64,000 nt of DNA from contig LSRY02000007.1 in assembly GCA_001643675.2 (NCBI GenBank), forward strand, positions 620,001 through 684,000, read 5' to 3'. The notes beneath the pieces were generated by a model. That model searched no databases. It was not told where the DNA came from and saw only the letters and a list, made by a program, of their open reading frames with translations. The translations under genes were made by a program, and so were the position numbers. Of this stretch, positions 1,210-63,699 are shown in pieces. Origin of the DNA: Monocercomonoides exilis PA203 (taxonomy: Eukaryota > Protista > Preaxostyla). Every line of letters starts with the position of its first letter. Position 1 is the stretch's first letter.

Positions 1210-2690
1210 TCGCGTTCACATCCTCAAAAAAACAATTCAATAAGCAAGAAATTGCATCAAAAAGCCAAATAAAATCGTAGCAAGCACGCCACAAACAGAA
1301 AACAACAAATGATGCACTTTTGAAAAAAAAAAAAAACACTCATTTCATTTGCTGATAAAACACAAAACTTTTCACACAACATTAATTCCAAATTCCTCCA
1401 TCTCTTCTTCTTCATTTGTTCATGCTTTCAATCAACTTTCTTGCCTCTGCTGACACACTCGACTCCTCTTCCTCTGACATCTCGTTGTATCCAATCGCAT
1501 CTGACATCGTCACCATCACTGTGCCGGGAGGAAAGTGCTGGATGAACTCTCTCTTCAGCACATTCAGCTCCACACGCTCGCACCCTCTTTCCGACAGGCA
1601 GCTCTTCACAACTGCCTCAAATGTGTTCCCTCCAACCCCCTTCATGTCTGGCCTCTCCCCATTCACAATCTTCTGCCCTGCCACCACTGCCTCATACTCC
1701 CCAAATGGGATCTGGAGTGTCAGGCACTCCCACAGCATCATCCCAATCGAGAATGAAACTGACTCCTTTGTCGCTCCCATCTTCTTGTTCATCTGCAGCT
1801 CTGGCGCCTTCCACCTCAGACACTCCTTCCTGTTGTCATCCTCATCCTCAAACGCTGATGAGGGTGGTGGTGAACCTCGACCATTCCTGTTGGCAGATGA
1901 GAAGTCAGAGGAAGATGTGATGATGGTGGAGGCGGAGGAGATGGATGAGGAATCTGAATCATCATCTGAAGAGAAGTCGGAATGCTTGGCAATGCAGATG
2001 ATCATGTGCTCTGAGAACAACACAATGTGAGGACTCAGATTGGCAAGGGAGGTCAGCTCGTCTTCTTCATTTTTAAATGAGTGGAGTGCCCCATTCGCCA
2101 CCCAGAACAATACCTGTGCAGCTGTGTGTTCTCTCTCCTGCAGAGTGCCTATCGCCATCTCCTTCTTCTCATTCCTCCCATGAAGCAGCATGAACAATGA
2201 ATCTCGCAGATCCACAATCAGCTTTTCAAACACTGATGAACAGGCAATTGCATCCACCAGATTCGACATGGATGAGGTGGTTGGACACAGATCCTCTCCT
2301 CGAACAAATGTTGAATCTGAATCAGTCGTTGAAGTGGATGAAATGGATGGTGATGGTGTTCGCTTTCTTGTCTCTTCATCTTCTTTTTCATCCACCTTTT
2401 CAAACATCCATTGAGGAATCTTGTTTGAGTCTCTTCCAAGGATGTATTCAGTGGAGCCACTCTCACTCAAAAGATGTTCAGATGACTCGGAATGCCCCAA
2501 GTTATTCTCATACACCCTCTTCTTCATCCTCTCCTCATTCTTCTTCTCTGCCTCCCTTTCTGCTCTCCTCCATTGCTCCTCAGGTGACATCTCCATCGTC
2601 ACCATCTCAAACGCTTTCGGATCCTTCTTCACTGTGTCATTCACAATCTCTCTCAGATCTTTCGCTTCATTTTTGATCTTCCTCCACCGA
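1210..2690 (-). repeat. Left arm of a long dispersed inverted duplication (cytoplasmic-domain coding region + 3' flank); partner at 58566-60042
   Basis: The translated tails align almost residue for residue. The reverse complement of 1210-1320 matches 59934-60042 (tgcatcatttgttgttttctgtttgtggcgtgcttgctacga...). Confidence 0.95.
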
Positions 2691-5600
2691 ATAGCCAGAA
2701 CAATGGAAACTATAACAACGATAAATAAAATTACAACCAATAAAACAATTACAATCAGCATGGATGATTTTCCTTCTTTTCCACTTTCAACAAGTTTTCC
2801 ATCCCCATTTGCATTTGCCTGAGGCTCGCTTTTGTTCTTCAGTACGAATGATTGCGTTGGCAAAGGTCGCTTTTCGTCACCAAACAAGACACATACGCTC
2901 ACCTCAGCTTCACTTGGAGCATCTTTGACCAAAGACGATTGGATGTTCGTGACAACTTCAGATTCGTTCACATATTCTCCATCTTCGAACTTGTCGGTAT
3001 GCAACGATTTCTCTTCATTCAGTGTTGTTGTCAGTTGGAACTGCAAGCGACACGGCATCAGCAAATTTCCTATGAACTTCAGTTTTATTTCCGCTCCTGC
3101 TTCTTCTTGTTCAACTCTCTCCAAATGAGGAAAAAACATCACAGACGTTTTTTCCAAAGCAACTCCTTCCATTTCGCAACCCTCATTCAAAATCCACATC
3201 GATGAGTTCGGCAGCAAGCCATCTCCTCCTTTAAAGCTCATCACATCCACAACTCCCCCTTCATCACAAATAATATTTCTTCTTGCTGAAGGATATCATT
3301 CAATTGACGGATTATTTCCCTCAAACATCCCCATTTCTATTGTCAACCTGCCCTTTGAAACAGAAATTCCTCCTTTTGATGAGTTTGCAACTGTTGTATC
3401 TTTCATATAACTGGTGCAGTTTGTGAGACAAATTAATGAACCATTCCAATGGCACACATCTTCAATTGCTGAATTACTAATAAAAGTTGCATCATTTTGA
3501 TATCCTTCAAATAAACAAAATGTGAAATTCAAGTTTGAACAGGAGCCGAACGATGCAAGCTTTCCACTATATTTTGGAAGATTGCATCCTTTGAAAGTGC
3601 AGTTACTGAAACTGATTGGACATTCATTTTGAGCTGATAATACAGATATAATGCCCATTTCAGAGCAGTTGAGATTCTTAAAGGAAGTCAATGACAAATT
3701 AATTGATCCACTTTTTCCATTATAACTCGTTCCAACATCACAAACACAAAAGAACATGCAACTTGGCATGCAAATATCGAAAACCTCCATACCTTTGCAA
3801 CAACAATTTCCATATAGTGGAATCTGTAAAACACTTCGAGTTGAAACAAATGAAAGTGAAGATATGGTGACGTCAGATAATTCCAATGTTCCTCCTATTT
3901 GATCAATCAGAAAAAATGATATTTCACACATTGAAGCATCTCCTATGTCTTTTCCTTCAAAAGAACAATCCTTTATCAAACATCTTTCAGCCATTGTTTT
4001 AATGAGACACCCATGAGAGGAACTCGTTTGTGATGGAAACACAAAATTGAGAAGCTCCATTTGCACTATCTCAGAGCAAAGAATTAATTCATCCCTGGAA
4101 GCAATGCCTGACGGAACCACACTTAAAGTGGCTGTTGAATGCACTTTCGATCTCAAAGTCAGATTGTCCAGATCAAACTCATCCTCAATGATGCATTCCT
4201 TGTCCACATAAAGTCTGGAATCGAAATCAGATAGGATATGGTTCAGACCATAATCAACGGAATAGCACGGACTGTCGCTTTTCCCGCAATTGCGGAAGTT
4301 CCTGCTGTCCGAATGAACTGAAGAGACAATAATTGTGGTTGACTGATAGGTTGTGATATAATCCATCAAATCAACATCCTTTCCCAACGAATAATCTCTT
4401 CCCCAAATTGCATTTGCTTTGATGAATTCTTCTGGTCGGAGATCAAATCGAAACTGCGTTTCATTGATTCGATTAACGATACTGAAACACTCCACAAAGA
4501 TATCCCGACCAACGAATGCAGCATTCCCAAGAAAAGACATTTGATGAAAAACGAAATCAACTTCCACACTTGTGGTGCAATTCAGATAGACGCCTCCTCC
4601 TTTTCCAGAATCTTCGTTGCAGCCGGACTCAATTATTTCGCTATTTGTCATCTTCAGTCATCCTCCTTCATTCAGAGCAAAGAATATTGCTCCTCCTTTC
4701 TGCGACGATTTTGCGTGATTGGTGATAAATGACGTCTTATTCACGCTCAACTGCACGCTCTCTGTTGAAATGCTTGAGATGGCGCATGACCCTTCTCCAT
4801 CACCTGTCAAAGTTCGAAATGTTGATTCGTTGATTGCCACTCTTGTTTCATGAGATAAATGTTCTTCTGTTTTTTCCTCAACAAAGACAAGCCCAGAAGT
4901 GCTCATATTTATTGCATCGAAGCTCATTCCTTGAAATGTACAAACAGATCCACTCATAATGTTTATCACACACTTCCAAAATGTTATTCGTTCAGTATGA
5001 AGGCTGGACACAAAAAGTTCTCCACTTTTCATAAGAATGAAGCAAAATACTGTTTCAACATTGTCAGCTATCTGAGATTCGAGTATGCAATTATCAAGAC
5101 TCAGATATCCTTCCCCATTGGAAATTACTGTTGTTTGGCTGTTCCCTCTTGCTTTTAATACACAAAATCATATGGAAGAAAAAAGAAGTGTTTCTGAATT
5201 GGACAAAATAGAACTGATGCTATCGTTAACACCAACATCTATTGTGAGATTTGATAATGATGATATGTCAATCAAAGCAGCTGCGGAATCAGAATTTTGT
5301 GTTGTTGACGATGAAGAAAAAGTGGAATGAACAGAAAATGAATCCAAGTCAAAGTGGTTTTGGATCAACGTGGAGCCATGAATGATTATTTCTTTTGAAA
5401 AAGGTTCTTCTTCAACATGACTGAAACCAGTCCAGAATGAAGAGCATGGATGGAAATGGTCACCGCAACCAGCAATATCAAATCCATCAGTCGATATATA
5501 AACCGTTGGGCTGTTGAAAGGAACGAGAAGAAGAAGAAGATTAATCAATCCAAACTGCTCATTTTCTCCGAAAAACGAATTTTCATCTGTTAAATACGAT

Positions 5601-8600
5601 GCGTAATCGAATGAAAACGAATTGTAATTCACTGTGAAATTCAAATCAGATCCAAATATGTAAATATTTGAACCATGTGCTGCTTTGTTTGAAGCAAACA
5701 TTGTATTATTGAAAGAAAATGAGTTTGCGTATGAGATCTGCAAGCAGTCCAGAAATAATGCTCCTCCTTTTCCTTCTGTTCCTGAACAAATGCAATGACT
5801 CATGCTGCAATTATGCACATTGAACTGATTTTGGTCTTTCAATGCTGCGCGAACAAGTCCTCCTTTTGGGATTGCGCTTCCTCCAATCCCTTCGAAATTA
5901 CATTCTTCCATTGTAGCAGAGGATGCGAATAAAATATTGAACGGGGAAACATTGTGAATTATTTGTGAAACTTCACAATTTTTCATCAATAAAGTTCCAC
6001 CGTTAATCAAAATCAAGTAATTAGAGCACTCATTATCACTTTCTTCAGTGAATGAACTGCTTTTAAACGATAAAGTCCCAGAAGATTCAATCACTGATTT
6101 CATTTCATTTGAAAAAAATTTTGGCAGATCAAAAATCATATCTTCTATAAGAAGCTTTCCTTTGTTGTTCAATATACTCATTGATTCACTTACAGACATT
6201 TCTTTGCTGATTGAAATTATCGATTGTGCTCCTATGGCTGTTGATTTAACTATGAGATAATCTATTTCAAAATGACTATCAATAACTGTATTGTCAACAA
6301 TCTGCAATTCTTTATCTTCTGAATTTTCAACCAAATTTCGATAACCTCTCCAAAAAGAACAGCAAGGATAAAGATTCGTTCCACATCCAATCATATCGTA
6401 TCCATCTGCTGATACACAAATCACATGATCCAACCGTTGCACAAGGAATAGACTCAGATCGACGGGTTCAACCACGAACTTCTCTCTGTCCAGACCTTGC
6501 ATTTTGACTTCGAGAATTTCTTCGTTTGTATTTAAACCTTGGAAATTAGAAGCGGTAATGGATTTATTAAGGCTTTCGCATTCAATAAATACATCCATTC
6601 CATATTTTGCAACGTTGTCATGAATTTTCATATTTTTCAAAACATAGTTTCCAAAGAATTCTCTTTCAAGCAGAAGATACAATCCTCCTCCCTTTCCAGT
6701 GTTTGCATTAGCCGAGCAAAATGTCACACAGCACTCTTCCAGAGTCATTTTCCCATTATCAACCAATTTGCAGTTAATACCACCTCCATCTGTTGATAAA
6801 CACGAGCATTCATCGATTTGACTTTCTCCTCCAATCGTGAGCGCTTCAACTCCCCTTGCGTTAATGACACTCCATTCAGATACGCAACTCCTGAAAGAAC
6901 TTCCGTTTAGCAAAATTTGAGAGTTCCCACATCCAACAACCAATCCGTTTTGTGCTTGTTCGAAACCATATAAAATATTATTTTCATCACAAGACTGTTT
7001 GATAGAAGTTACATTGGAATATTCAAAAGCAAGAATTCCATTCGAAACAGCACAAATCCCTTTGAATCGGCTAAATAAAACGTTATTGATGCTGAAAAAC
7101 GAAAACTTAACTTCTCCTGTTCCAGAGACAATGGAAGCTCCACTCTTCTGTATCGGTCCAGAAGAGCTGCCACATTCCCAGTTGCTGATCACAACCCGCC
7201 CAACTGTAATTATTATTAAACTTGAAACATCGTCAGTTGGATTCTCTGATAAAATGAAGATGATTTTATTGAATGCAAGTGTCGTATGAGCATCTCCTGC
7301 TTTTTGTTCAAAACATCCTCCTTCACTTATATTTAGATAGGATTTCTCATTATTTCCTCGGATTGAAAGTGATAAGTTGAATCTCCTCAATCGTTGTTCC
7401 AGCAAAATTGATTCATTGATATGGATTGTGCTCATCTCATCTGTCATCTTCCCCAGTCCAAAAATCATATCTCCACATGGATAATCAAAGGCTCCACACT
7501 GACTGTTGTTTGTTCCTCCAAATTTTACAAATAGCACAGACGTGGGCTCTGGAAAGAGATATGGCTTGATTGATTGATTGATGGAGCATTCATCCAATGA
7601 ATCCATAACCCAAAAATTTTCACTGTTCGTGACTCAAGCACTGTGCCATCCCACAAATCTGCTTGAAGCACCTGCCGTAGAGCAGCACTGAGAAGAAAAA
7701 TATCACTTCCATATTTTGCTGAGTTTTGAGAAAATTGTATCGATCTCATAGTGTACTTGGATGAAGGACTTTCCAGAGAGAAATAGACTCCTCCTCCACA
7801 CCCTTGCTGACCACTCACTGAACACTCACTGACGTTGTTTGACTCAAAATTGAATCCACAGTCATTACCAACATTGACAAATACGCATCCACCTAGAGAG
7901 TTTGTTGTAAGACATCTTATTCCAATGAATGACGAATTCTTTATTTCAAATATTTTCCCGTTTCCTGCAATCCCAGTCAATCCTCCTCCATTTCCAATTT
8001 TTCTGGTCAAATTCTTCAACGATGAATTTATCATCTTCATCCCGCTTCCATTTTCGCAGTAAATAGAGCAGCATTTTTCAAAAATAGATTCTCTTATTGT
8101 GCTGTTAACCTCTTCAAAATAGCATCCATTTGAAACAAAAATTAAACCGCTGCTTGAATCGCTTTCAACTTCATTAAATTCCGAAGCATTCATAATCCCT
8201 CGCCCATCGTTTCCTCCAATATGCACAGTGCATATGTCACCGAACTTCACAGTATTGAGACTTAAATTATTTAAGTGTGCTTCTCCATTCACAACTTTTA
8301 AGAAGTTATACTCAATTTTTCCGACTCTCCCTTTAAGCTGCGCAGAACACTTTTGAAGTGTTAATATTGATGAAGAACATAAGATCAAGCAACTGCGCTC
8401 CACAGCAAATTGAGAGGGCAAAGAATATTTTATGCAACTGAATGAAACTACATTTCTTGTTTCAATAAGCCCATCAGCAGCTCCAGTGCCATCTTCTTCA
8501 ATCACAGTTTCCGTTCCTTCCATTTCGCTTTCAAAGCTAGCTGAATATGATTCAATTGCAAATGCATCTTTGATTGAATAAGAACTTGTGAAAGTGATTT

Positions 8601-11600
8601 CTGCTGTTGTTGAAGAGACTGTTTGGAAGCGCCTTTTCATCAAATGTGGAACTGTTCTGCATGGATAAGCTCTCAACCCACAACCTGAATGATCAAGACC
8701 TTCACCATCCCCACTCACAAATCCTTTGCCTTCAAACGGAGTCAAAAATGATCCAAGAAGAAGTTCAACACTGTTGTTAGTTGTGCTTCGTTCAAAGCCC
8801 ATCAGATCCTTTTCACCTAATTCTGCCCATTCAAATGAAAATCTTTCCTTTTTGATCAAGAAGCTCAAATTGTTTCCATCCACAAACACGCAATTGCCTT
8901 TCCACCCTGAACAACCATCAAATATAACTTTTTTCAAAGAAAGTTCTGTCTCATCAACTATTGCATAAACATATAACCCTCCTCCAATACCTTTTCCATT
9001 TGCTTCGCTTCCTGATGAAGGTGTCTTGCATTCGTCAAACATCGTATTCTGAATGCTTGTAACTCCGCTTTGCAGTGAAGCAAAAATGCCTCCTCCTTTC
9101 AGATTTCTTCCTTCCGCACATTCGCCTGAAACAGTACAATTATCTAAAAAAACTGATGTGGATGTTGGAATTTGCATATTCACAGAAATGCAACCTCCAT
9201 TCCCGTTGTTCAACTTCACTCCAATAAGCGAACAATTGTTGAAATTGTTGACTTGTTCATTGCAGATCTCAAACGCAGATCTTCCTGAAAATAAGAATTT
9301 TCCTTTGAACAATGCGTCTGATATTTTTAATTTTCCGCCCAACATTCGAAGGATTCCAAATTGTCGAGATATTGACTCATTAATTGAAACAAACGAAATG
9401 GAAAGCAATGATAGTATTGATGAGCACTCGAGAATAGAAATGTGCTTTTGCTGAAAGGTGTCTGGCAATGAAAGCTCAAGATTTGATATCTCCACTGTTG
9501 AATTTAATTTGCAGACAATGAGCGCTTCACAGTTATTTTCACCCTTATCATCAAATGAAACAGATGCTCCTGAAGTTTGTGATGTTAAACAGAAATGACA
9601 ATTCAATGCAATGAGCTCGTTGCTAATAAAGCTTATTGAATCAACATCAACTTCATTTAGTGAAGGACTAATTCTTTTTTCAAAACAGTAATCAATTGAT
9701 TTACACATAAATCCCTTAAAACCACAAAATGGATGATCTATTCCACCATCTCCATCTGTGTGAATAGAAGACGTCTATAAACAAAAAAAAACAAATATTG
9801 GAATTTTTGGTTCATCTTCTCCATTTTCCGTTCCACTCATTTGATTCAGATTATCAGGTATGTCACATCCATTATTAAATAAAAGTGATTAACAGTTAGC
9901 CTTCACTTTTAGAAAAATTCTTGTTCCACAGGAAATGAACAAATCTTTTCCGAAAGTTGCATTGTTTCCCTTGCTCTGAGAGAAGAGCACGCTTTCTCCA
10001 AATGAGAATGAAGCAGATGCATCGTTAACTGATATCATCACTGCTCCTCCCTTTCCTGTATCGTGCTCTGAGCAAGATGTTCGGCATCCATCGAATGTTG
10101 TCGGACCATTAACAATGAGCTTCTCATTTTCTTTCAACTCAACAAACAATCCTCCGCCACACGCATTGTTGCTGCAAGCTTTGCAACTGACAAATGTGCA
10201 GTTATCAACAATAATGTTGCATGAATAGTTTCCTTCAATTCTTCCTGTTGATTCAAAGAATCCTCCGTTTCCATTTGACTTTTCAACTTCAGAAATGGAG
10301 CAGTTATTCAGATTCACATTGCAGCCATTTCTCGACACTATCATGCTATTCGAGGCAAATGACAGTTGTGTGTTAACGGTGAATGTGTACAGAACCAACG
10401 TTGACTGAGAAGCTCTCGCAATGCTATATTCCAATTCGCTGTTTCCACTGTTGCTCAACTTCGCTCCGCAGTTTTTCAGTTCGAGGGATTCTGCTGAGCA
10501 TGCTATCAAAGTCGATAAGGAAGGCAATGAGGCAGGGACACAGAACGAAATATTGCTCATCTTTGTGGCTTTAATCACATGAATCATGCCAACAGCAGGG
10601 ACTTGACCATTTCCTTGAATATTAATCTCAGTCCCCATAATCCCACATTCAATAGTCCAATTATTTTCATCGAGCTCCATTGATTCTTTGAAGACAAATC
10701 CACTGTTTAAAACAATCGTCTTCGGAGCACCAGAATATCTGAGTGAGGCAGCATAGTTAATTGTTTCACAAGGATACGATGAAAAACCACATGCACTGAA
10801 ATCTCTTTGTTGAGAACCACCAACGCGTGCTTTCTCGTTGAGTCTCATCAAATATGGAGCTAAAGGAATCGGAATGTCTCTGAATCCTTCTTCAAACCCC
10901 ATTGCCTCAGTGTTTTTTGTGCTATCTGATGACAAAACAATTTGAAATGTTGTTGATGTGACAACTGAGCTCAATTTTTGTGCATCAATGAAAATGTTTT
11001 TTCCTCCTAAATCTGCTTTGTTTTCATTTCCTCCTGAACCAAAAGTCAAATTCTGCAAGGCAAGGTTTGTTCCTCCTCTTTTTGTGTAGATAAACAACGC
11101 ACCTCCAAATCCTCCAATTGAGTTATTGACTGTTGCTGTGCATCCAGAAAACATTGTCATTTCACTATTCTTCCCGATAATTACCTCTCCTCCACTTTCA
11201 ATACTTAGCCAGACACAGCCACCACTTCCTTTTAAACATTTGCAGTTGCTCGCATTCATTCCACAAAATGTCACAATTTCATTTCTTTGAACTGTTTTTT
11301 CAAAAACAGCTCCATTTCCTTCATTTCGAACAATTGAAATGAAATCAACTGAGTGGAATTTCAGATTCTCAGAAGATTTTGCATCAATGGCAACCGCAGA
11401 AACAGAGATGAATTTCATCGATTTGAACTGGACATTTGAAAATGTCATTGCTCCACAAGAAAATGAAAACAAGGAAGTTGCGAATGGATTATGATTAGTA
11501 GCTTCTGAAGTTATTAAACAATCGCTGACACTTAATTGTCCGCTTGACTGCGTTATTGAAAATAGTTGTGTGGAGATTGATACTGAAGAATTCCGGACAA

Positions 11601-13452
11601 TTGTCAATTTGTTCAACGAAGCAGAACCACTTGTAATCTGAAATAAAGTGGCAGTCGATGAAGAGATGCTCGTTGACTCCTTGCTGGCTCCACAAAAGTT
11701 CATTGTGAGATTATTAACGTTCATTCCTTCTTCAGTGTACGCTCCAGCAGCGATATCCACGCGAGTGGTTAATCCTGAGATGTGATCAGCCACCTGAATT
11801 GTGTGCTTGATCGTTTTGCATGTGGGATAAGGGCCATCACTTGATCCATGACCGCACATTCTATTTTTTTCTCTATGCACAACATCAACTTTCAAAATGT
11901 TGAATCCTTGAGGAATCCATGTGCTGCATTCAGACATTCCGATCATCACGCGTGGTTTTGGTCCAGTTGAAAATGACAAGCTAAAAATGACGTTTGTCTT
12001 TGGAGATAATTTTTGCTTGCAGCATCCACACAAACATCAGATGAAACATCACCAACATTTTTCTCAAAAAAGCAGAAAAAGATTTTGCTTTGATTATTTG
12101 TTGAACCTCTTATTGCAACTGCTGATGAAATTGAACGAGATATAATGCTCGAAAAAGAACTTTCTCGAATAAAACAGCTTGAATTTGTAATAAAAGTTAC
12201 TGCACCTCCTCCGGTATTTGTTTCAGAAAACGGTTTTCCATTTGTGAATATGCAACAACTGATCTGAACAGGATTTTTAGTGTTATCAAAATGGAGTGCA
12301 AATGCCTGATGCCCAGCTTCCCCATCACTGAAATTCGATTGAGAACAGGAAAAAGAATTGCATTGAGTCCAAAATGCTCCACCGGAATGAGGACAAGAAC
12401 AATTGAAAAAATTTGATTTTTCAATAAAAACTGAGCCTTTTCCATTTGTGAAACCCATTGAGCCTGAACCTTCTGGAACGAAGCAATTCATTCCAACACA
12501 TCTTGAAAGTTTTAGTGTTCCTTCAGATAAGAAATAAATAGCTCTATTTGTGATATTTATAAACCAACAATCATGACATATCATATCCCCTGTAGTAATT
12601 TTTTTACAAGCCATTGAATAATTATTATTGAAATTCTCATTTGACAATCTGACATTTGAATAAAATGAAGTGTTGCAAATGCATTGGGAATTGTGACCTC
12701 TCAGTCCATGTATTATTCCCCCATCATATGGAGAAATAACGTTTGCGAATTCACAAGAGCTTATTGAAGATGTACTGGTAGTTTCGCATGCGGTGTTTGA
12801 CAGTTCTTTTGAACGAGATATGTTATTAAAAATGGATTGGTTAATGCTGCTTTTTACACTTGAAGATGACACAAAAAGAGGAAAAGGAGATTTAACATCG
12901 AATGATGAAAAATAACAATTTTTCATAAATGCATCGCAGTCTTGAAGCAAATGTTCAGTTGCAGCATTAAACGTAACAATTGTTGGAAATGACTTTCTAA
13001 CCTCATTTGAATACAACGATATGTTTTGAACACAAATAAAACCGTTTGACAAGCTTATTGGACTTTCTGCTGTAAATAGTTGTGGAAAAATAACGACTGA
13101 TTCCAATATAAGACAAGAGTTGTGTTTTGCAACTAACAAATGATTTCTTTTGAGTCGTGCCTGAATCTCTGTGCATATAAGAGATGAATTATCCAAAAGC
13201 ATGCATGTTGTCAGAATTGATGGAATCAAATTGAAATATTTGAATTTCAACGATTCATTAATCTCCATTTTTCGGTCACTTTTTAAGAATAGATTTGCTT
13301 TTTCACATAAAGCATGTTGCACAGATTCTTTGATGAAATGGCAATCTGGAATCCATGAATAATAGTTGATGGTATTTTCTGGTTGATTTCCCCAGATGTC
13401 AAATACATAATTCAAAAGAATAAAAAATTGCAGCAAAAGCAACTCTTTTCAT
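1412..13452 (-). pseudogene. Disrupted giant surface receptor: 8 Cys/GGA beta-helix modules + membrane-proximal module + TM + pseudokinase tail (~4000 codons)
   Basis: ORFs 11946-13442, 9889-12033, 7525-9708, 5168-7606, 4658-5032, 3296-4651 and 1412-3250 join into one protein. In-frame stops: TAA 9889-9891, TAG 9775-9777, TGA 5168-5170, TGA 4658-4660, TGA 3296-3298. Frameshifts near 11985 and 7630, and probably at the start (ATG 13452 is out of frame with the hydrophobic leader). Sequence across the stops keeps family motifs, e.g. NNPSIE*YPSARRNIIC versus NNPSIQNYPSARRNILC in the paralog. Confidence 0.85.
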
Positions 13453-17419: not shown

Positions 17420-17870
17420 AATCGGAATAATAGATAGTTTTCGGAAAGAACGTTTTTTTACCTTTGTATAATGTTTTATTTTTATTTTTTATTTTTCAAA
17501 TTGTCTTTAAATTTTTTTTCAAACAGAATCTGATGGGAAAAAAGCTTGCAATGTGCAGTTTTTCATGAATTGCAAGCCAAAAATTGTCTAACTCAAAGAA
17601 ACAATAATTTAAAAGTTAGTTATCTTTTTTTTTTTGACAGTTTTTTGTCAACTGTTATTTTGCGATAACTATTCTCATAACTGGGTCGAAATTTATCACT
17701 TTATGAATTTTGTACCACACAGCAATCTCAAAGATTTTTCTCAACTTTTTTTTCTTTCAATATTTTATTTTGCACGAGAATGTGAAAATTGTAATTATGC
17801 AATTGCAGAAATTTTTTGGAACAAATCATTGATTTTTTCATTAATGAATGTGTTCTATTCCAACTCAAAG

Positions 17871-18074: not shown

Positions 18075-18079
18075 TATTG

Positions 18080-18710: not shown

Positions 18711-18744
18711 GAATTCCCCCTGATTATTTCATTCATTTGTTGCA

Positions 18745-18795
18745 AAATAAAAAAATAAAAAAAATAAAATTAAAAATAAAATAAAATAAAAACAG
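18745..18795 (+). repeat. (AAAAT)n-type microsatellite
   Basis: aaaataaaaaaataaaaaaataaaattaaaaataaaataaaataaaa. Confidence 0.8.
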
Positions 18796-47127: not shown

Positions 47128-47423
47128 CACAAAATGTTAAAGCAGCTTATATTATATACTAACAACTCAATAAATTTTTATTGTTTCAGTATTTGAAATA
47201 AAATAGATTAGATACAATGCAGATTGGATCAAATTATTCTAATTGAAAAAATAATTTAAAATTGTGGGGGTTATTTAAAATAACCTCTGTTTATTTGAAT
47301 TGACTTGCTTATTTTTAAAATATATATGCGATTTAGAATTGAATGTGCTAAACATAAAAAATGATTGAGTTAGATTATTAGCATGAAAGACTGATATCAA
47401 ATACTAAAGTTTTTTTTTTGATT

Positions 47424-48424
47424 TAGGGTGGTTTTTTTATCAGGACATTTTTTTAACCCGGATATTTTTTTTTATTGGCGTATCTCACTAAATAAAAACT
47501 AAAAACTTAAAAAGCATATTGCACCAGGTTTGAGCACGTATTAAATGTTCATACAAAAAAATTTTTTTGTCAATTTTTGTTTTTGATGAAGATCTTGAGA
47601 ATTTTTAATTTATTTTTGATCATTTGTTTTGCTCGTTTTTAATCGACACTCTTTTTCTGTCAGTTTTTAGCCACTGGACCATGAATCATTCATAATTATC
47701 ATATATAATTTCAAATCTTTTTTGTTTTTTCTTATTTTTTCACGAGTTTTTCGCATTTCATTGTTATTGAAGAAAATTATAAAAAACTGAAAATAATGAG
47801 CTTCACAATATTTATTAGATGATTTTTGTGATATGCGTCAAATGATAAATACTTGCAGTATATATGCGCAAGGTGAAAATTTTGTTAAATGTTGCTGCTT
47901 TTGCAGTACAAATCAATTTTTCATTTTGACAAAATTACTCATTTTGATTTTAATTTTATGAAATATACAAACAAACTTGAGAAGCAATGCATTTTTATCT
48001 AATTTGCACAAAATTTTTATATTTTTATTGAAAGAACAAAAAACAGTTGAGAAAATATGAGTTTTTTATAATTTTCTTCAATAACAATGAAATGCGAAAA
48101 ACTCGTGAAAAAATAAGAAAAAACAAAAAAGATTTGAAATTATATATGATAATTATGAATGATTCATGGTCCAGTGGCTAAAAACTGACAGAAAAAGAGT
48201 GTCGATTAAAAACGAGCAAAACAAATGATCAAAAATAAATTAAAAATTCTCAAGATCTTCATCAAAAACAAAAATTGACAAAAAAATTTTTTTGTATGAA
48301 CATTTAATACGTGCTCAAACCTGGTGCAATATGCTTTTTAAGTTTTTAGTTTTTATTTAGTGAGATACGCCAATAAAAAAAAATATCCGGGTTAAAAAAA
48401 TGTCCTGATAAAAAAACCACCCTA
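47424..48424. mobile_element. Foldback/MITE element: 365-bp inverted arms around a 271-bp spacer
   Basis: 47424-47788 is the reverse complement of 48060-48424, with no mismatch in the stretches compared by eye. Termini (TA)GGGTGG...CCACCC(TA). The flanks read as either a TA or an ATTT duplication. Confidence 0.92.
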
Positions 48425-49050
48425 TTTAAAAAAAATTCGATCTTTCAATAATCTTCTTCGAAAAAAAGAACAATTCGATAATTCGTTCCAAATGCTGTTC
48501 TAACATATGCAATCGAAGATATGAGCTTCATTATAGAGTTTGAATGATTTTTGCAATTAAAAATACAATTTTCCCAATATACAAATCATAAAGGCTTCTG
48601 AAAACTTTCAGTTTATTTTGTCACAATTGTCAATTGTTTCTTAATAACTGTAACATCAACAACAACTTCAATGTTAACTTTTTTAATTCCCTTTGGATGA
48701 CTTTGCCTTTAAATATTTTTGCAACAGAAATTTTCAAATGATATTGTTTAACATTTTTCGCCTTGTTGAGAAACAATGTTAAAAATCATTAACAAGAAAT
48801 ATATAAAACACTGAATTATAAAAAGTATGTATGGTTATTTTTCAAGATTTCGCATCGAGTATTAAACATTTCTATTTTTAACAAATTTTTCTTTTTCGAT
48901 ATTTATCTAATTATTTAGCCGATTACTCATTTTTCTTTCGTGTTCCGAATTCTATTAACCTATTGCCTTTTGATGCTTCAATCTTTTATCTTTCATCATC
49001 CTCAGGATTCCTCACAATCTCAATTTCTATTTCAATTATGACAGACACAC

Positions 49051-49234
49051 ATAGGACGAAATTTTGAGCTTTCTGAATTTTGTTCCATTCTACTCCAACA
49101 AATATTTTTCTCAAATTTTAAATTTATCCACTTTCTTTTTTGACGTGGGAATGAAAGAATTATTATGATAAGGTTGAAGAAAAAATTTGGAACAAATCGT
49201 TGTTTTTTTCATAAATGAAAGAATTTTTCCCCAT
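49051..49234. mobile_element. ~180-bp MITE-like repeat, copy 1
   Basis: Collinear similarity to 60213-60390 and 63700-63880 (ggac.aaat..aattttgttcca..ttttctcaa..tttggaa.aaa..ttt.cccca). Confidence 0.6.
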
Positions 49235-49289
49235 ATTCTCTCGCGCTCCCATCATGTTTTCTCTTCCAGCTTGCTCAAAGCATCATCAA

Positions 49290-50200
49290 CAGTTCTTCCG
49301 ATCTTCCTTCAACAACTCCGATACCTCTCTCAGCTTTCAACACTTCTTTCCTCCACCAAACACGCTCTTTGTCAAACGATCTTGTAAAATATAATGGATC
49401 CGAAACTCAAATATTGAAACCTGGAAATTTGGCTTCATACGATCAGAATGGCCTTCGACTTGAATGATGAGAATGGAATGATTCAAATAGTGGAGCTGTC
49501 CACGGAGGTGCACTTTGTGTTTCTTGTGCAAATGGAAATCTCTCAATCACTTCTTGTTCATTCAACAATTGTTCAACTGGTGATCATGGTGGAGTATTAT
49601 TTTGCAGATATTTGCAAAATGTTAACATCACAAAATCTAATTTCACAAATTGTTCCGCTTTGCATGGTGGAGCTGTTGAAATAGCATATCCACAGTCATC
49701 CTCTGTTTGGTCATTCTCAGAAAACAGAGTGGAAAGTTGTTCAATCACAAATTGGTGCGGAACTGGTTGGAATTTTGGACTAAATAATAATCAGTAAAAT
49801 TTTCAATTCCTGTTTTCCAAATGCAAGTGCATTTCAAACTCAGGTGGTGATGCTGCTGGTTCTTTAACATTCTATTGGCCTCCATAAAATTAACCAAGTC
49901 AGTTTTCAATCAATAATTGTCAGTATATAAGCAACAATCTGACCACCTCTGCCAATTATGGAGGATGCTGCAATTTTTTTTCAATCAACTGATTCCTTGA
50001 TGAATGAAGTGATAATCATCACATTCTGTTTCTTCGATAGCAGTGAGGCTACAAATGTCAAAGGGAGTAATGACTTCTTCAACCAAAGCGAAATTACAGA
50101 ATCCCAGTTCAACTTATGTGTGGCAACAACTCCACCAAAAAGAGTGTGTAACAACAATGCAAAAGATAATACTGAGTTCAATGGCTTGCTCTCTTCATAT
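49290..50200 (+). pseudogene. Decayed fragment of the GGA-repeat surface protein family (N-terminal region)
   Basis: Frame-hopping translation gives AFNTSFLHQTRSLSND, HGGALCVSCANGNLSITSCSFNNCSTGDHGG, TKSNFTNCSALHGGAVEI and IITFCFFDSSEA..GSNDF, with many stops and frameshifts. Confidence 0.75.
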
Positions 50201-51607
50201 CTTTTGTCTTTTTTTCGAGAGAAATACCATTATCATTTGACCAACTCTTTTTTGAATTATTTCTTCGCTTCATTCGCATGTTTTTCCCATTTTATCAACA
50301 AATCTCCATAATCATATCAATCCTATGTTTATTCAACGTTTATCCAAAAACCAGCAACGTCTTTCATTTATTTTCTTTTTCAATCAGTTTTCACCTTTTT
50401 ATTCTTCAATTCATCTCTCATTTTCTGAAAGCTTCATTTCTTCAAAAAAAATCTTTCTTGATAATTTCTTTTGTTATCTCTGATCCAGTGCAGAATTTGA
50501 AGAAATGAAAAATAATCAAAAGGATGATTACGGTGATGTGGAAGTTGTTAAAATGACGTCTTTGCACAATAATTTGAAGATGATGATGCTTGGCGAATTG
50601 AAGGAAATGATTAAAGATCGAGAATTGCGAAAAGAAATCTGGTAAACAACATAGAGTTTCGTTTTTGATGATTTTTCTTGGACTCATTATTCATTATCAA
50701 TAACTCTTTTTATAAGAGCTTAATACATTGAATCTTTGTCCCACCTTCTTTTCATCAGTTTTCCAAGCTATTTCACTGCATTGCAAAATCCAAAGCATTT
50801 AATTGCATTTATCAACATTCATCTTGAGTCTGTTTGAATGTTTGAAAATAGTCAACTTTCAAAAAATCAAAATTTGGTGAACAAGCATAAAATAATTTCT
50901 CATCATTTGGCCTTTTTCAACTTTCATCACTTCAATTGCAGAAACTCTATATGTTCCTTATGGAATCAAATTCTTTTTTTTTTTCGAAAGTTCTCTTCTT
51001 TCTCTGGCAATCAAGACAATTTTCTGTGCATTATTATAAAATGAAAAAGAAGATGATAAACAAATAATTGAAAGGATATTTAAATAAGACCCAATTACAT
51101 AGCATTTATCATAATTACATCGATTTAACAGTTATCACTCTCGTTTTTTTCCTTTGAGGCAATAAAGGATTTCATTCACTGACTCAGCTTTGTCGAGTTT
51201 ATGACAAGAATATGAGTAGTTCATCATTTTATTAAGGAATCCGAATGGGATCATTATCTTCAAAAAAAAATTCTGTTTGAGCTATATTAATATTCAATAA
51301 GTTGCTTTTTGGAAAAATGAATGTCTCAATAAAGACAAAGAGATTCGAACAACATTGAAATGAAGCGCACAAATAAACATCCGAGAATAGATATTTTGAT
51401 TCATGCTTGAAATAATTGCAAATGAAAAAAATAATCGAATAAGACAAAAGATATTTTTTGTGATTGAATCGAAACAGTTTTCGAATTAATATTCCAAAGT
51501 CAACATTTTTTGTTTTTATTTTCAGTTGAAAGTGTGTCGCAAACATCATTAGCCAATCATTGAACAAACCATTTTCAATTTCCTAATGATCATTTGCACC
51601 CATATTT

Positions 51608-54600
51608 ATGAAAAACAACAGTGAAGGAAAAATTAAAATTCATTCCTGCATGCTGTTTATCATTTATCTTGTTGCAGTTCTGAGTTTTTTCTTGAATGTC
51701 AATGCGTTTGAAGACAATTCTTTGAGAAATACAAATGATGAATCATTCCTTTTCGGATTCTCCAAAAACAATGAAAATACATTTTCCAATCCAAAATTGA
51801 ATAATTCACAAAGCAACAACAGCGAAGATCGATCCACTCATTTTCAAGATGATAAAATATTTGAGTTTTCATGTTTGAAAACTTCATTTTTATTGATAAA
51901 CACCTCAATAACGTTCTCGAAGCAAATGCTGCAAACAAGAGGAGGAACAAATATAGTTGATGGAACTATATCCAACGTGGTTGTTCTCGGGTGTTTGATA
52001 TTGTGCAACGATGAAAAGACAAATGGTCTTTTCAGAATTGCCCATGGAAGAGCACTGTTCAACAACTTATCAATGAACACAAAGTTCCAAAGCAATCAAA
52101 TTCCACAATTATTGGTATCTGAGCATTCAGCCAACAAGAGATGCATTGTGAACGATTTTGAAGCAATCATGTTGTCATCCTCAACATTTTCTGATTTGGT
52201 GTTTGAAAAGGCTCCGATTATTGACTCTTCGCATTCATCTTCTTTGAATATTGCCAAATGTGTCTTCTCGAACATTTCTTCCACTCAAAAGAAGGATCCA
52301 TTTTGTTCAGAAATGTCGGAGCTTCAGAAAGGAAATGGAGCATTCATCATTTCTGGATGTGAATTGCATGGTGTAGAAAATGTGTTTTTTGGAGGAATTG
52401 GAGATAGAAATCGTGCTTTGAATGTTTTCAACACAAGTGTGATGCACTGCGCCAGAACAATGAATTCAAGTTCAAGAGTGGAGGTCAAAGAGGATTGGAG
52501 GTTTGAATGCACAGAATTTGTCAATCAGCATGTCACTGATTATTCAGCAATTGATGAGGGATTTCACACTTGTGGAGGGGCTATTTTATTCAATGGCCCT
52601 TCATCAACACTGAGTGTTCAGGGCTGTATTTTCATGGTTTGATTTGTTTTTTGTTTTCAATCAAAAAATATGAAATATATTGATTTTTTGAATTTTTCGT
52701 TTTGTTTTTTTCATGAAGAATTGTTCCTGCAGCAGATGGGGAGGAGGAATTTGCATTTTGGATTCTTTGAGCACAAAAATAGGGAACTGCACATTCGATT
52801 ATTGCACTGGAAGAAGAAATAACGAAAATGTGGGCTCTCATGGAGGAGCAATCTTAATCGATAAATCTCGCTGCTATGAAATTATTCATTCAACTATAAA
52901 AAATGGATATTCGTCGATGTACGGAGGTGCAATTTTATTAAGTTGCTTCAGAGCTCCTGTTTCAACTGAATGCGACAAGAATACTTTGCAAGACGGATTG
53001 CCAATCCTTTTGTTCAATATCACATGTTCCAATGAATCTGTAAATGAAACTTATGGAGGAGCGCTTTGTGTTAAGTATCCTCCTCCTTCGTTTTTCATAA
53101 TGAGCGAATGTTTCTTTCAAAATTGTTCCGCAAACACTTCATGTGGAGGATGCATTTGGCTAAATGCAAGCACAGTAAATTTGAAAAATAAATTTTGTTT
53201 CTATTGCTTCTTCTTTAATAATTCTGCCTCACAGGCATCAGATGTCTTTTTACATGATACTGATGGAAAGATAAAAGAAAGCCCATTTGTGGAATGTTAT
53301 TCATTGACAAGTGGAGAGAGCAGATGTGTGAGTTCCTCACAAGGCACAAAGAATGAGTGGCTGCCAAATGGATTTCTTGTGAGATATGTCATTCCAGATG
53401 GAGGAAACAACAATGCGCTCTGTGGGTTGACAGTTGAGGATGGCTGCAGCTCATTGAAATTCACATTGGAAGACACATTAACAAAGAGCAGATGCAGAAT
53501 CATGCTAATCGAGGGAACTTTTGAAATGAATGAATCAAATGGATATGTTGTGTTAGGGAAGAGAATTTCTATTCAAGGGAGAGGAAAGGATGAAACACAA
53601 TTGAATCCAGTTCGTGTTGAGGTAGATCAAGTGTTTCTGAATGTGGATGACGGGATATGCAAACTGTCATCTTTGAGCATTGTGTTTGACTCACATGAAA
53701 GTTCAAGATTGTTCAGATTAAGCTCCTCGAATTCTCAATTGTTTCTCCAAGAGCTTGTCATCAGCACACCATTGAACCAGGAATGCCTTCCCTCAAAAGA
53801 ATTTTTGAACAGTTTGTTTGAGGTGAATTTTGCCAATTTTCGAATGACTGATTGCATTGTCAAGAACATCTTGTCCAAGGCCAGTCTCTTTCAAGAAGCT
53901 TCTTCTGCTTCATTGTTGTTGCTGTCTTCATCTTTTTCTCTTCCAAACAGTGATGAATGCGTCGTTGCCAATTCCAACTTTTCACATGTGACAAAAACAG
54001 AAGGGGATGGAGCAGTGATGTCAAAGACAATCAGTGAGGGAGAGTCATTTTGTCTGTGGAACACAACAATCGAGAATTGCAAGTGCAATAGTGGGAGTGG
54101 AGGAGGGATCAGGATTGACATGACATCGTCCACCAGCTCCTTCAGAATGGGATCCTCCTCGTTTCCAACCACACTCGACTCGTGTTCATGCAGCAAGTGT
54201 GGAGGAGGATTGTTTCTTTGGCTGGGGGATGGGGCAGCAGACTTTGTGATTTCATCAGTGAGTTTTGTGGATTGTGAGGCAAGAGAGGGAGGGAGAGATA
54301 TCTTTGTAAATGGGAGCAACATGAATGGCGAGACAATCAATTTGGAGAAGATTTGTGTTTCACTGAATGGGCTGGGATATGAAGAGTTGATGGGCTTTGA
54401 TAGAAGTCGGAGTGAGATGGGAATGTTTCCATTGAATGTGTTTTGGGAGTCATTCCAACCACCAGCACATGTTGGAGGAACTGAAGAAAACTGGGTTTTT
54501 GATTCGAATTTTTGTGGATTCAGCGATTTCCCATGTCAGACGATAATGCATGCTGCTCAGCTCAGATTTGGTTCATCACAAAGGCAGATTGTTGTTGGAG

Positions 54601-57600
54601 AGGGATATGAGCTGGATGAGGAGATGGTGATGGACGGACCAGTTTGGAACATCTCGTGTGAGGAAAGGGGAATGGTTGTTGATGTGCATGAACCACAAGC
54701 AGAGCTCTCCAATCAATGGTTGGTGAGTGTTTCCACAGAGTGCTCAATATACAACATCTGCTTCTCTCTTCCTTCTTCTCTCTCAGATGCCCACTCTTTC
54801 ATCACACTCCCCACTTCCACTTCCTCTTTCACTCTCTCAAACTGTTCATCAATGAATTCAACATCTGAGATTGTGAATGAGATTGGATTCTGCTTTGTGA
54901 GTGTGGTTGGAGGGGAGTTGAAGATGGAAATGTTTGAGACAAAAGGAGCAATGGTGTTTTCATCGTATTCGTTGATTGAATTGAAGGGGAGTGGTTTTGT
55001 TGTGAATTGTGTTGAGTGTGTTTTTGAGGGAATCACAAAAGAGAATGGAGATGGAGCTTGTGTTTGTGTTTGTGTTGAGGATGAGTCAAGTGCTCATGAG
55101 TCAGAAAAGAAAAAGCTGATTATTGACAATTGTACATTGAATGGATGCTGGGCAAAAGGGAACAGAGCAAAAGGGGGAGGGTTGCATGTGTGTCTGAGAG
55201 GCAATGATGAAATGATTGTGAATGGATCATCGAAGTTTGAAGGGTGCTGTGCAGGAAAGAGGGAAGAAGGAGAAGAGGATGGATGTGGAGGAGGAATATT
55301 TCTATCATTGGAGGATGATGCAACTCAGATTGTTCTCCTGGATATGAAGTTTGAGGGGTGCTGTGCCTGGAAAGGGAAGAATGTGTTTGTGAATGGGAGC
55401 TCTCTGGATGAGGTTGTGGATTCCGCGCATTTCTGCTGGGAGATGAGTGAGAAGGAAAAGTCATCGATGGAGGAGCTGTGTGGGTGGGAGAGAGGCAGCA
55501 CAGGGGTTGGGTTTGTGATTCCGCTTGTGGTGTATCTGTGGAGCAACTTCAGTGGGAATGGGTTTGTCGATGGGGAGGAAGGAGGAGACTTCAGTGGATG
55601 TGGATATGCTGCTGCTCCATGCAGATCAATCTCCCATCTCATCTCTCTCAAATTCACCCCACTCCCTGGAAGTTCTTCTGATGATGATGATGAAGATGGA
55701 TTGTCCATCTCAGTGTCTCACATTTCCTCACTCACCTCATCCCTTTCCCTTTCATCTTCTGTTGAATCAGAACAAATCTCGATGAAATTCATTGGGAAAG
55801 ACAATGAGTCAGGGATTGGTGTGGGTGATGATGCGGTTGGAAATGAAGAATGGATGATACATTCTACAATCCATCTTTCATTTGAGGTTCTCTCCTTCCA
55901 CATCCCAACAGCATTTGCCCATCACAGAACATTCATCAGATCCTCAACTTCCTCATCGCTTCTCCAAATGAAGCACTGCTCTTTCACCCCTCAAAGTTCA
56001 AGTGAATCTGTCTCATTCACTTTGCTGAGTGTTTCAGAGGGAGATCTGCTGATTGATAACTGTTCACTGTCCTCATTTTCATCCACTCACCCATTTCTCC
56101 TTGTTTCACTTCCTTCTCAGTCAATCGCCATTTCTAACATGACAGTCTCGAATGTCTCGATATCTTCGTGCTCTCTTGTTTCATTCGAAAGAACACCGTC
56201 TCATCTGCCTGTGAATTCATCTGCTCACAACGAAGTGTCAGACAAGCCTTGTTGCTCCCTCCAAATCCAGTCATCCTCATTTGCCAACACCACGTGCTCT
56301 GGTGACAGTGCAACCAGTCTTTGCCTCGGAGTGTTCGATGCTGTGGAGAGTGTTGTTGAGAAGTGCACATTCAGCCGGTGTGTGAGCGAGGCGAGTGAAA
56401 GGGGAGGAGCGCTGATGATGTGTGTGAAGAGCGAGGAGTCATCGGCGGAGGTGAGGCAATGCTCATTCACACTCTGCAGGTGCTCGACTGTGGACGGAAG
56501 AGGAGGAGGAATGATGTTTGATTGTGTGGATCCCTCATCACCAGCACCTTCACCGACACCAACAACAGATGGCTCATCTTTTCTCCCACTGAAGATTTCA
56601 GAGATCCGATTCACAATGAATGATGCACTGGTGGGGAAGGACATATTCATCAACTGCCAATCGATCGAGCAGCAGATCAACGAAACACTCTTTGCTCTCG
56701 ACTTCACCCAGGAGTCGCTCCAATCGAACAAGTCCATCTGTGCGAGTGATGCTGATGAGCAGGATGTGGACTTGATCCCCTTGATCACGTTTTTGTATGC
56801 ACCCCAGATCTTTGTGTGTCTCGATTCGGCAGACACTCGCCAGTGTGGATTGCCAACAAACCCCTGCCAGAGCATCTCATCTGCTGTTCACCACATCCAG
56901 CCAGGACTGCTCAACACCATTTTCATCAACACCTCATCCACCTTCCTCTCAGAGACAACTGTGCATGGGCTGTCCATCCTGCCTTCGACAAAGCAGCAGG
57001 CAACAATCCAGCTGAGCACAACCATTCCACACACAGGAGATGCCCAGAGTGTGGTTCTGTTTGAGGAGGATTGCACAGTTCGCAACTGCCTGATATCATT
57101 TGCCTCTTCGTTTGAGGCAACACACTCAGCGGTATTCGCTGAAATGTCTGGATCGTTGGAAGTATCTCAATGCACATTCACAGCAGCCGATGCTTCGTTG
57201 GAGCTGGATTCACATGTGATGGCTGTTTGGGGAGGTGTTCTGAAGATGAGCGAGACATCATTCAGCTGGCTGTCTTTTGCAAAGCCCTTGCTTTTGTTTT
57301 CAGATGAATCAGAAATTGTGCTTTCCCAAATGACTCTGGAGTCTCTCACATCGACTGCTGATGTTGTTTCAATTGGATCGAATGCAACTGTCTCGATTGA
57401 AAAAATGAACTGTTCCAACATTTCATTGAGCAATGGCTGTCTGATCTCAACGAACAAAGAAGAACTGAACATGAATGGAAATGGAAGAAGAAATGATGAA
57501 GGTGAAGGAAATCTCAGAATATCAACTGCAGTTTTTGAGAATATTACATCAAATGAGAATGATAACAACAACAAAAGTGTTGTGAGAATTGAGAGGAGCA

Positions 57601-59843
57601 AGACAAGTGTGAATCTGATAAATTGTTCGTTTTCTTATTGTCTGCTTTCAGCTGAGAAAGGAAGCCAGTTGTCTGTTTCGGACAGTTCAGATGTGTCTGT
57701 TGTTTCGTGTTTGCTTGATGGCAAAGCAACAGATGATCCAGTCAGCCATCAGAAGTGTAATAATCTGGGAGAAGATGAAGAAAATGACAAAGAACTCAAC
57801 CCATTGTGTGGTTGGAATGGATCGGTTGTGGATGTGAAGTCAAGCAATGTGACAATGAAAGACACCACAATCAGCAACTCGAAGAAAGGAGGGCTTTCAT
57901 TGTTTGGTGGATGTTTGAAGATTGAGAAAGGAGAGTTCATGAATAACAATCCATCTATTCAGAATTATCCATCAGCAAGAAGGAACATCCTGTGTGAAGG
58001 CTCTTCAGAATTGAGTGTTGTGAGTTTGAAGGGAGGTGATGGAACATTGCCAAATCTCTCACTTTGGATATTGGATGGAGGATGTTCATTGGAAGGGATT
58101 GCCGGAGAAAGGGCATCTCCCTTTTTCATTCCGAAGGTGGAGAGTGTGTCATATGAAAAGTCAGGGGAGAAGGTGAATCTTGTGTTCAGAGGATCACTGC
58201 TCCTCCCTTGCAATCTCTCATTCGAAACAGTTGCAGCAGAAGGAGATGAAGAGGTGGTTGAGAAGCATTTGTTTGATGAAAGAGGTTTCATATCAGAAGA
58301 AGAGGTTCATGGATTTGTTCCTGTGGAAACAATTGAAGGTGTGGCAAATGGAGCAGAAGTGAGAGTGTGCATTCTGTTTGGAAAAGCTGATTCGCCATCC
58401 ACAACTGAGTCATTCATTCTGAAGAACAGGAGTGTCTCAGAATCAAAAGGAGATGAAAGAATTGTCGAAGGAGGAAAAGAAGGTAAATCGATATGGCCAA
58501 TCATTGTTGTTGTATTATCTGTTTTGTTTTTGATTGTTCTCATTGTTTCGATTGCATTGGCAGTCAGATGGAGAAAGGTTAAGAATGAAGCGAAAGATCT
58601 GAGAGAGATTGTGAATGACGCAGTGAAGAAGGATCCAAAGGCATTTGAGATGGTGACGATGGAGATGTCACCTGAGGAGCAGTGGTGGAGAGCAGAAAGG
58701 GAGGCAGAGAAGAAGAATGAAGAGAAGATAAAAAAGAGGGTGTATGAGAATAACTTGGGGCATTCCGAGTCATCAGAGCATTTGCTGAGTGAATGTGGAT
58801 CGACTGAATACATTCTTGGCCAAGACTCAGACAAGATTCCCAAATGGATGCTGGAGAAGGTTGATGAGAAGGAGGAAGAGGAAGAGGTGAGAAAGAGATC
58901 TCCTTCACCTTCTATCTCATCCACTTCAACAACTGATTCAGATTCAACATTTGTTCGATCGGAGAGTTTGTGTCCAACCACTTCATCCATGTCGAATCTG
59001 GTGGATGCAATTGCCTGTTCATCAGTGTTTGAAAAGCTGATTGTGGATTTGAGAGATTCGCTGTTCATGCTGCTCCATGGGAGGAATGAGAAGAAGGAGA
59101 TGGCGATAGGCACTTTGCAGGAGAGAGAACACACAGCTGCGCAGGTGTTGTTCTGGGTGGCGAATGGGGCACTCCACTCATTTGAGAATGAAGAAGACGA
59201 GCTGACCTCTCTTGCCAATCTGAGCCCTCACATTGTGTTGTTCTCAGAGCACATGATCATCTGCATTGCCAAACATTCCGACTTCTCTTCAGATGATTCA
59301 GATTCCTCATCCATCTCCTCCGCCTCCACCATCATCACATCTTCCTCTGACTTCTCATCTGCCAACAGGAATGGTCGAGGTTCACCACCACCCTCATCAG
59401 CGTTTGAGGATGAGGATGACAACAGGAAGGAGTGTCTGAGGTGGAAGGCACCCGAGCTGCAGATGAACAAGAAGATGGGAGCAACAAAGGAGTCGGTTTC
59501 ATTCTCGATTGGGATGATGCTGTGGGAGTGCCTGACCCTGCAGATCCCATTTGGGGAGTATGAGGCAGTGGTGGCTGGGCAGAAGATTGTGAATAGGGAG
59601 AGGCCAGACATGAAGGGGGTTGAAGGGAACGTATTTGAGGCAGTTGTGAAGAGCTGCGTGTCGGAAAGAGGGTGCGAACGTGTGGAGCTGAATGTGCTGA
59701 AGAGAGAGTTCATCCAGCACTTTCCTCCCGGCACAGTGATGGTGACGATGTCAGATGCGATTGGATCCAACGAGATGTCAGAGGAAGAGGAGTCGAGTGT
59801 GTCAGCAGAGGCAAGAAAGCTGATTGAAAGCATGAATAGATGA
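51608..59843 (+). CDS. Intact giant receptor-like pseudokinase (~2700 aa): signal peptide, 4 CG-x5-PC/GGA modules, membrane-proximal module, TM, kinase-like C-lobe
   Basis: ORFs 51608-52642 and 52713-59843 join through a phase-0 GT-AG intron at 52637-52718 (QGCIFM|NCSCSRWGGGI). Signal peptide MLFIIYLVAVLSFFLNVNA (possible true start 51650). TM IWPIIVVVLSVLFLIVLIVSIALAV. Kinase-like motifs LRWKAPE, FSIGMMLWECLTLQIPF, ERP. Confidence 0.9.
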
Positions 59844-63685: not shown

Positions 63686-63699
63686 AACTATATATGATT

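Follow-up and report, generated by a model that had tools for sequence, protein, structure and literature searches.

Contig-linked tail haplotypes in a large family of predicted beta-helix surface proteins with a kinase-remnant tail in Monocercomonoides exilis

The window, the whole 64-kb stretch of DNA analyzed here, is part of M. exilis contig C69; the genome searched with it comprises 82,301,135 bases in 101 contigs of a nanopore assembly. Four members of one gene family lie in the window, as a first-pass annotation had recognized: gene B is intact, gene A is broken, gene C is kinase-less, and fragment D is decayed. Gene B occupies the forward strand. Its first exon (51608–52636) includes a signal-peptide-like stretch from position 51650 and matches the N-termini of annotated B-type paralogues at 77–86%. 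A putative 82-nt GT-AG intron (52637–52718), placed from the sequence, would separate it from an intact second exon of 2375 codons (52719–59843), and the paralogues resume at the same NCSCS motif. The two exons were analyzed separately. The second encodes beta-helix modules followed by a transmembrane (TM) helix (58491–58565), a juxtamembrane segment (58560–58950), and a kinase remnant (58968–59732).

Gene C (reverse strand, 33619–37716) is an intact gene for a protein of 1365 aa, with a TM helix at ~33667–33747 and a tail of 15 aa that contains a YxxPhi-like YKPI motif. Its match to B has an E value of 4.6e-12, and its modules are built on the same skeleton; at least 34 copies, at 43–81% identity, make up its subfamily. 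Fragment D (forward strand, ~49306–50215) is the decayed N-terminal part of a family gene, recovered by blastx with E values down to 6e-46 and with frame changes; its ectodomain type differs from that of B.

The ectodomains are chains of 300–430-aa modules (~365 aa), each opening with CG-x5-PC, and a single ~1.1-kb module accounts for the difference between the two lengths found among B-type copies. Of the shared skeleton described at first pass, the CG..PC caps and GG[AG]-hydrophobic motifs occur far more often than in shuffled sequences (in B, 4 versus 0.1 and 10 versus 0.3, respectively), whereas FxxN lies at most slightly above them (10 versus 6.8 in B, 6 versus 4.8 in C, 7 versus 7.3 in A2, and 13 versus 8.2 in A3). 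Strict GGA(I/L/V) is enriched over shuffles (0.1) yet sparse, with four occurrences in B and one in C. The B module at 54465–55550 was predicted as a right-handed parallel beta-helix with a pLDDT of 81.5, and a structural search aligned 249 residues of the model to a PL6 lyase (Z 20.9, rmsd 3.1); lyases, tailspikes, and similar beta-helices made up the top matches, at Z about 20. Foldseek returned no match for this module at E≤0.001, but the wider structural search did find the beta-helix matches. No Pfam family was found in the ectodomains. The model places the module among pectin-lyase-like right-handed parallel beta-helices, in agreement with the fold anticipated for the family, although a shared beta-helix fold by itself says nothing of function.

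A right-handed beta-helix with GG(A/G)-hydrophobic turns is reminiscent of the polymorphic membrane proteins (Pmps) of chlamydiae and trichomonads; those of trichomonads have a C-terminal TM segment and raise adhesion (PMC6701047). The M. exilis family differs from Pmps in its tandem Cys-capped modules and its kinase-remnant tail, and neither a Pmp Pfam family nor an autotransporter domain was detected at E<0.1. Because FxxN is barely enriched and no Pmp family matches, the kinship with Pmps suggested earlier is not upheld, and the ectodomains are at most beta-helix-adhesin-like.

Nine B-type copies lie on C69, and over most of their length their identity is ~90%. Comparison of these copies delimits a hypervariable patch in the N-terminal beta-helix of B (52719–53318, forward strand), the first 200 residues of exon 2, where amino acid identity is 71% versus ~90% elsewhere. 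In the patch, dS is 0.7 versus ~0.15, dN/dS is 0.25, and the changes cluster next to GG turns. A scan of the B-type copies in 100-codon bins for positive selection gave a dN/dS of at most 0.42 in every bin. A binding face far from the membrane, supplied with old or imported variants, would fit this patch, which is no proof of positive selection.

The structural model of the cytoplasmic tail shows a kinase C-lobe preceded by only two strands; a full N-lobe with the VAIK lysine is absent from it. Foldseek matched the model to BTK, BRAF, and RIPK2 at E ~1e-6, and the tail sequence matched ILK at E 3.6e-4. The remnant of B is of TK/TKL type, with LSPH in place of HRD, RWKAPE retained, and no DFG. 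Paralogues were picked by similarity to B's tail, 120 proteins in all and likewise 22 sequences for DNA-level work. Among the 120 tails, HRD was present in none, DFG in 1, and the GxGxxG pattern in 2, with LSPH and ICIxxHSD replacing HRD and DFG. PF07714 was scored above its cut-off in the A tail (E 5.5e-6) and is carried by most of the 120 paralogues; B searched against Pfam as a whole protein scored no family. These features identify the tail as a predicted TK/TKL-derived pseudokinase, as had been proposed, with a C-lobe fold kept under selection. Judged by its motifs, it must be presumed catalytically dead, and its role, if it has one, must be that of a scaffold.

The tails do not form the one fixed scaffold that the first-pass annotation had envisaged. 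Between contigs, the kinase region has a dS of ~1.0 and a dN/dS of 0.09; the TM helix is a patchwork of blocks common to several ectodomain types; and the last ~60–80 aa fall into many types with a median identity of 44%. The juxtamembrane segment of B is strongly conserved as protein. Its DNA seems to be exchanged genome-wide, since it has no close copy (best 87%), its best matches are scattered over many contigs, and dS reaches 0.74 even among B-type copies.

About 1000 first-look candidates came out of genome-wide DNA searches with the kinase core, a number that bears out the expectation of a huge family; in the protein databases, the tail has 524 matches that pass a length filter. In a sample biased toward B-like tails, 75 of the 94 best tail matches lie in open frames of at least 2000 aa. 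The available portion of one published account lists 332 predicted protein tyrosine kinases (320 TKL) as the largest family of M. exilis (PMC6759080), and the corresponding portion of another reports that this family overlaps the unclassified repeats of the genome (PMC8767320). The window genes belong to this published TKL "tyrosine kinase" family (MONOS genes with PF07714). The available parts of those accounts give the count and the repeat overlap only, with no ectodomain fold, catalytic-motif loss, or tail conversion, and literature searches on Monocercomonoides pseudokinases and oxymonad polymorphic membrane proteins yielded nothing relevant. In Blattamonas nauphoetae, single-TM proteins contain the same degenerate motifs, and some share the ectodomain motifs as well, which makes the architecture old. 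Blattamonas tails around one query are 28–51% identical, with one at 85%; of the two organisms, only M. exilis showed tightly similar tails. The transmembrane kinases of Entamoeba histolytica likewise form an expanded receptor-kinase-like family in a gut protist, and one of them, PATMK, has a role in phagocytosis and is possibly a pseudokinase (PMC2211552). The likeness is an analogy only: the Entamoeba proteins have CXXC ectodomains and keep their catalytic residues, whereas the M. exilis proteins have beta-helix ectodomains and no catalytic motifs.

Gene A (reverse strand, 1412–13452) is a receptor pseudogene of ~4000 codons with an A-type ectodomain and a C69-type tail. Its ectodomain is 92% identical at the nucleotide level over 9.6 kb to that of the paralogue L010, also on C69. 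Five in-frame stops interrupt it (at 9889, 9775, 5168, 4658, and 3296); alignment with L010 shows a frameshift at ~7630, and two further frameshifts probably lie near 12000 and 13400. Window-matching short-read contigs from two DNA runs cross the stop at 4658, and one also crosses 5168. An alternative genetic code, under which three TGA stops in one frame would be read through, was rejected because the stops of A also include TAA and TAG, because A is frameshifted as well, and because the standard code leaves B, C, and L010 open. Short introns at the stops were also rejected; L010 aligns there gap-free.

The tail of A tells a different history from its ectodomain. By translation, its TM helix lies at 2690–2764 (reverse strand), and the tail with ~200 nt of 3' flank (1203–2859, reverse strand) is 88.5% identical to B 58402–60048 over 1668 nt, rising to 97% over the 567 nt at 1397–1963. 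As proteins, the two tails are 93% identical over 447 aa. The earlier description of nearly identical tails holds for the kinase core and C-terminus (95–99% at the nucleotide level) but not for the TM/juxtamembrane region (65–93%), and the distal ectodomains are only 20–31% identical. An informative-site map and alignment place the junction at ~2800–2820 (reverse strand), just past a conserved F(I/V)LKN(R/K)S motif and ~15 codons before the TM helix. Upstream of it, informative sites follow L010; downstream, they follow B-type copies. Between A and B, ectodomain dS is saturated, and dS is 0.16 for the kinase region and 0.06 for the C-terminus; between A and L010, the ectodomain value is 0.09–0.15 and the C-terminal value 1.47. 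Identical runs of 158–247 nt connect A with B-type copies. None of the listed short-read contigs bridges the junction, and neither a recombinase nor a signal sequence was seen there. By these sequence comparisons, A is a chimera in which a now broken A-type ectodomain adjoins a B-like C69 tail. In the pseudogenes A and L011, the tails carry too few private changes for the conversion to be dated.

The similarity of tails follows the contig. A genome-wide DNA search with the kinase core of B (59020–59620, forward strand) identified this region as a C69-homogenized block: 13 kinase cores are at least 92% identical to B, all of them on C69. The corresponding query from L019 on C13 returned 7 cores at this level of identity, all on C13, and the top 14 cores for L018 on C10 were all on C10; the effect was weaker for a C16 query, with a pool common to C54 (83–87%). 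Among 114 annotated proteins, assigned to contigs by the contig's length, 19 of the 23 pairs with kinase identity of at least 95% and ectodomain identity below 55% were on the same contig, versus a baseline of 2.3%. For pairs with unrelated ectodomains, kinase similarity was 0.88 on the same contig versus 0.82 (permutation p 0.0005 without C69), and ectodomain and kinase similarity were correlated at a Spearman coefficient of 0.03. A decay of kinase similarity with distance is at most suggestive (Spearman −0.46, p 0.10; −0.66, p 0.054). The contig effect is a bias and no rule; a kinase cluster of 15 is distributed over 10 contigs, and some contigs are less than whole chromosomes.

Trees of separate segments are incongruent, as expected if recombination uncouples ectodomain from tail, and this part of the first-pass proposal stands; tail dS is far below ectodomain dS, and the family is not one of few copies. 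In the kinase tree, all 13 copies from C69 group in a single clade (100/100), which is rejected for the ectodomain (AU p 0.002). L011 and L012 are sisters in the C-terminus tree, a grouping rejected in the kinase tree (p 0.003); the kinase clades A+L010 and L016+L017 are not rejected (AU p 0.105 and 0.06). Parsimony counts of contig changes (71, 78, and 68), made without a shuffle control, were given no weight. Individual genes show the same uncoupling. The 3' end of B occurs at 12 loci, 11 on C69, spread over three ectodomain types, and B-type ectodomains on other contigs bear other tails, as in P0053 on C13 (a B-type ectodomain at 84%; a C13-type kinase, 93% identical to a C13 gene and 80% to B). 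L011 is like L012 apart from a kinase patch of ~450 nt, which is 97–99% identical to copies on C69; L016 is like L017 apart from separate patches in the TM helix and the kinase, which are 97–99% identical to C13 neighbors.

Based on these data, we hold with good confidence that ordinary ectopic gene conversion biased to nearby copies, together with purifying selection on the tail and ectodomain types too diverged to take part, explains the pattern. The genes would encode type I surface proteins of an oxymonad family of ~1000 copies, with tandem pectin-lyase-like beta-helix modules, one TM helix, and a dead TK/TKL remnant. Purifying selection keeps the tails alike in all copies, and this similarity would let copies repair one another through ectopic conversion. 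Conversion tracts would end where homology drops, just outside the TM helix and in the variable C-terminus. Same-contig copies are favored in the observed pattern, presumably through the conversion process itself; such a bias would result in unrelated ectodomains on one contig bearing one kinase haplotype. The kinase dS of ~1.0 at a dN/dS of 0.09 between contigs indicates that selection keeps the protein alike and conversion the local DNA. The ectodomain types, having diverged too far for conversion, would change through duplication, the gain or loss of modules, and pseudogenization. Gene A would be one outcome: it joins an A-type ectodomain, since broken, to a C69 tail. A variable head on a conserved tail would thus need no dedicated machine. 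In the available portions of published accounts, gene conversion homogenizes parts of receptor paralogues such as TLR1/TLR6 (PMC2077338), CEACAM (PMC7042247), and protocadherins (PMC1852091). Those are small tandem clusters, whereas the M. exilis pools comprise dispersed genes up to ~1 Mb apart and reach across ectodomain types.

Regarding function, the predicted fold and the variable N-terminal patch incline us slightly toward binding of gut bacteria, glycans, or host surfaces. A fuller version, in which this protist without mitochondria has an innate recognition repertoire of ~1000 beta-helix sensors with a hypervariable binding face, a dead-kinase scaffold, regional haplotypes that sort signaling or expression classes, and possibly restricted expression per cell, appears unlikely.

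Trypanosome VSGs and Giardia VSPs are large surface families with a variable N-terminus, a conserved C-terminus, and mosaics, and the M. exilis family resembles them in each respect. Programmed variation of this kind, in which different heads are placed on a constant tail or each cell expresses a single member, would accommodate the chimeras, including the switch of A near the TM helix, as well as the pseudogenes and a family size of the VSG order. Unlike VSGs and VSPs, however, the M. exilis proteins have a large cytoplasmic domain under purifying selection, and neither a silent archive nor an expression site was seen; the predominance of long open frames among the top copies, in that B-like sample, argues against such an archive. 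Moreover, the tails are not constant, tract ends vary by gene (a kinase patch only in L011, TM and kinase patches in L016), the A junction showed neither recombinase nor signal sequence, and no bin has a dN/dS above 1. We regard the VSG/VSP-like variation proposed at first pass as distinctly improbable.

Homogenization of the tails by short-read polishing of the nanopore assembly is very improbable. Ten rounds of short-read polishing went into the assembly (PMC8767320), and tail segments attract very many short-read contigs, but short reads carry no contig information and should not yield contig-specific haplotypes. In addition, the copies are 92–98% alike rather than identical, with mostly synonymous differences, and for most proteins NCBI and EukProt give one and the same sequence, probably from two assemblies. 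Purifying selection with local whole-gene duplication, and no conversion, would fit a kinase dN/dS of 0.06–0.09 and the overall similarity of the nine C69 B-type copies. This explanation is hardly tenable, as synonymous sites match the tail pattern (the low kinase dS between A and B despite saturated ectodomains), the trees are incongruent, and long identical runs join A to B-type copies; barring assembly errors, it is already refuted for A, L005, L010, L011, and L016. That the family is largely a selfish or neutral spreading repeat with no recognition role is equally hard to credit: the repeat overlap reported in the available part of that source (PMC8767320) and the pseudogenes speak for it, but purifying selection extends over the whole protein (dN/dS 0.06–0.42), Blattamonas has the same architecture, and the genes are without a mobility enzyme.

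By their motifs, the 120 members examined are predicted to be non-catalytic, so the largest M. exilis gene family would appear to be misdescribed as kinases, and kinome counts would overstate the real kinases. The papers searched gave no description of a beta-helix chain joined through a TM helix to half a kinase. Contig-linked haplotypes of the tail are a record of recombination in a protist that is not known to have a sexual cycle, and they may help to place contigs on chromosomes, with C16 and C54 as a candidate pair. Finally, the variable N-terminal patch offers a concrete target for ligand binding.

Among the other genes in the window, one encodes a member of the Peptidase S41 family (39859-42311, + strand; E = 4.8e-10). 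As in the kinase-less family relative, gene C, a C-terminal transmembrane segment is followed by a short tail that ends in a YxxPhi-like motif; the product is probably a surface or endosomal protease. A conventional protein kinase exon (21183-21710, + strand; Pkinase, E = 8e-30), in which the HRD and DFG motifs are both intact, is unrelated to the receptor tails. The minus strand carries an amino-acid transporter (26352-27638; Aa_trans, E = 4e-14) and long low-complexity frames rich in Ser, Pro, and Gln (28614-32060 and 42843-47136), the second with a weak LRR match (E = 0.002).

Four copies of a dispersed repeat of ~160-180 nt, ~70% identical, lie at 17682-17848, 49054-49237, 60215-60394, and 63700-63876, one of them 370 nt downstream of the intact receptor gene, gene B. 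Two decayed transposase-like frames occupy 60868-62597, where the frame at 62094-62594 weakly matches an IS1595/ISXO2-like DDE transposase (E = 0.003). An inverted repeat pair at 47413-48435 (376-nt arms, 99% complementary, 271-nt spacer) looks like a young non-autonomous, MITE-like transposon or a foldback element. Imperfect AT-rich palindromes were found at 17857-18088, 38373-39212, and 63284-63691, of which the first two (17871-18078 and 38371-39212) form a related pair.

Elsewhere in the M. exilis assembly, family members frequently form inverted pairs with identical tail scores within a pair and a spacing of 5-20 kb (C13:1246489/1257762, C10:986666/1006369, C16:133863/151230, and C59:184257/190400).

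Between contigs, the kinase cores of C16 and C54 are each other's nearest pool (83-87%), and the two contigs may be parts of a single chromosome or may have exchanged a segment. Outside C69, the window's own contig, the C-terminus and 3' flank of gene B recur at a single locus in the assembly, C42:391381-391869 (86%), which is missing from the genome-wide kinase-core hits. This locus represents a possible cross-contig transfer.
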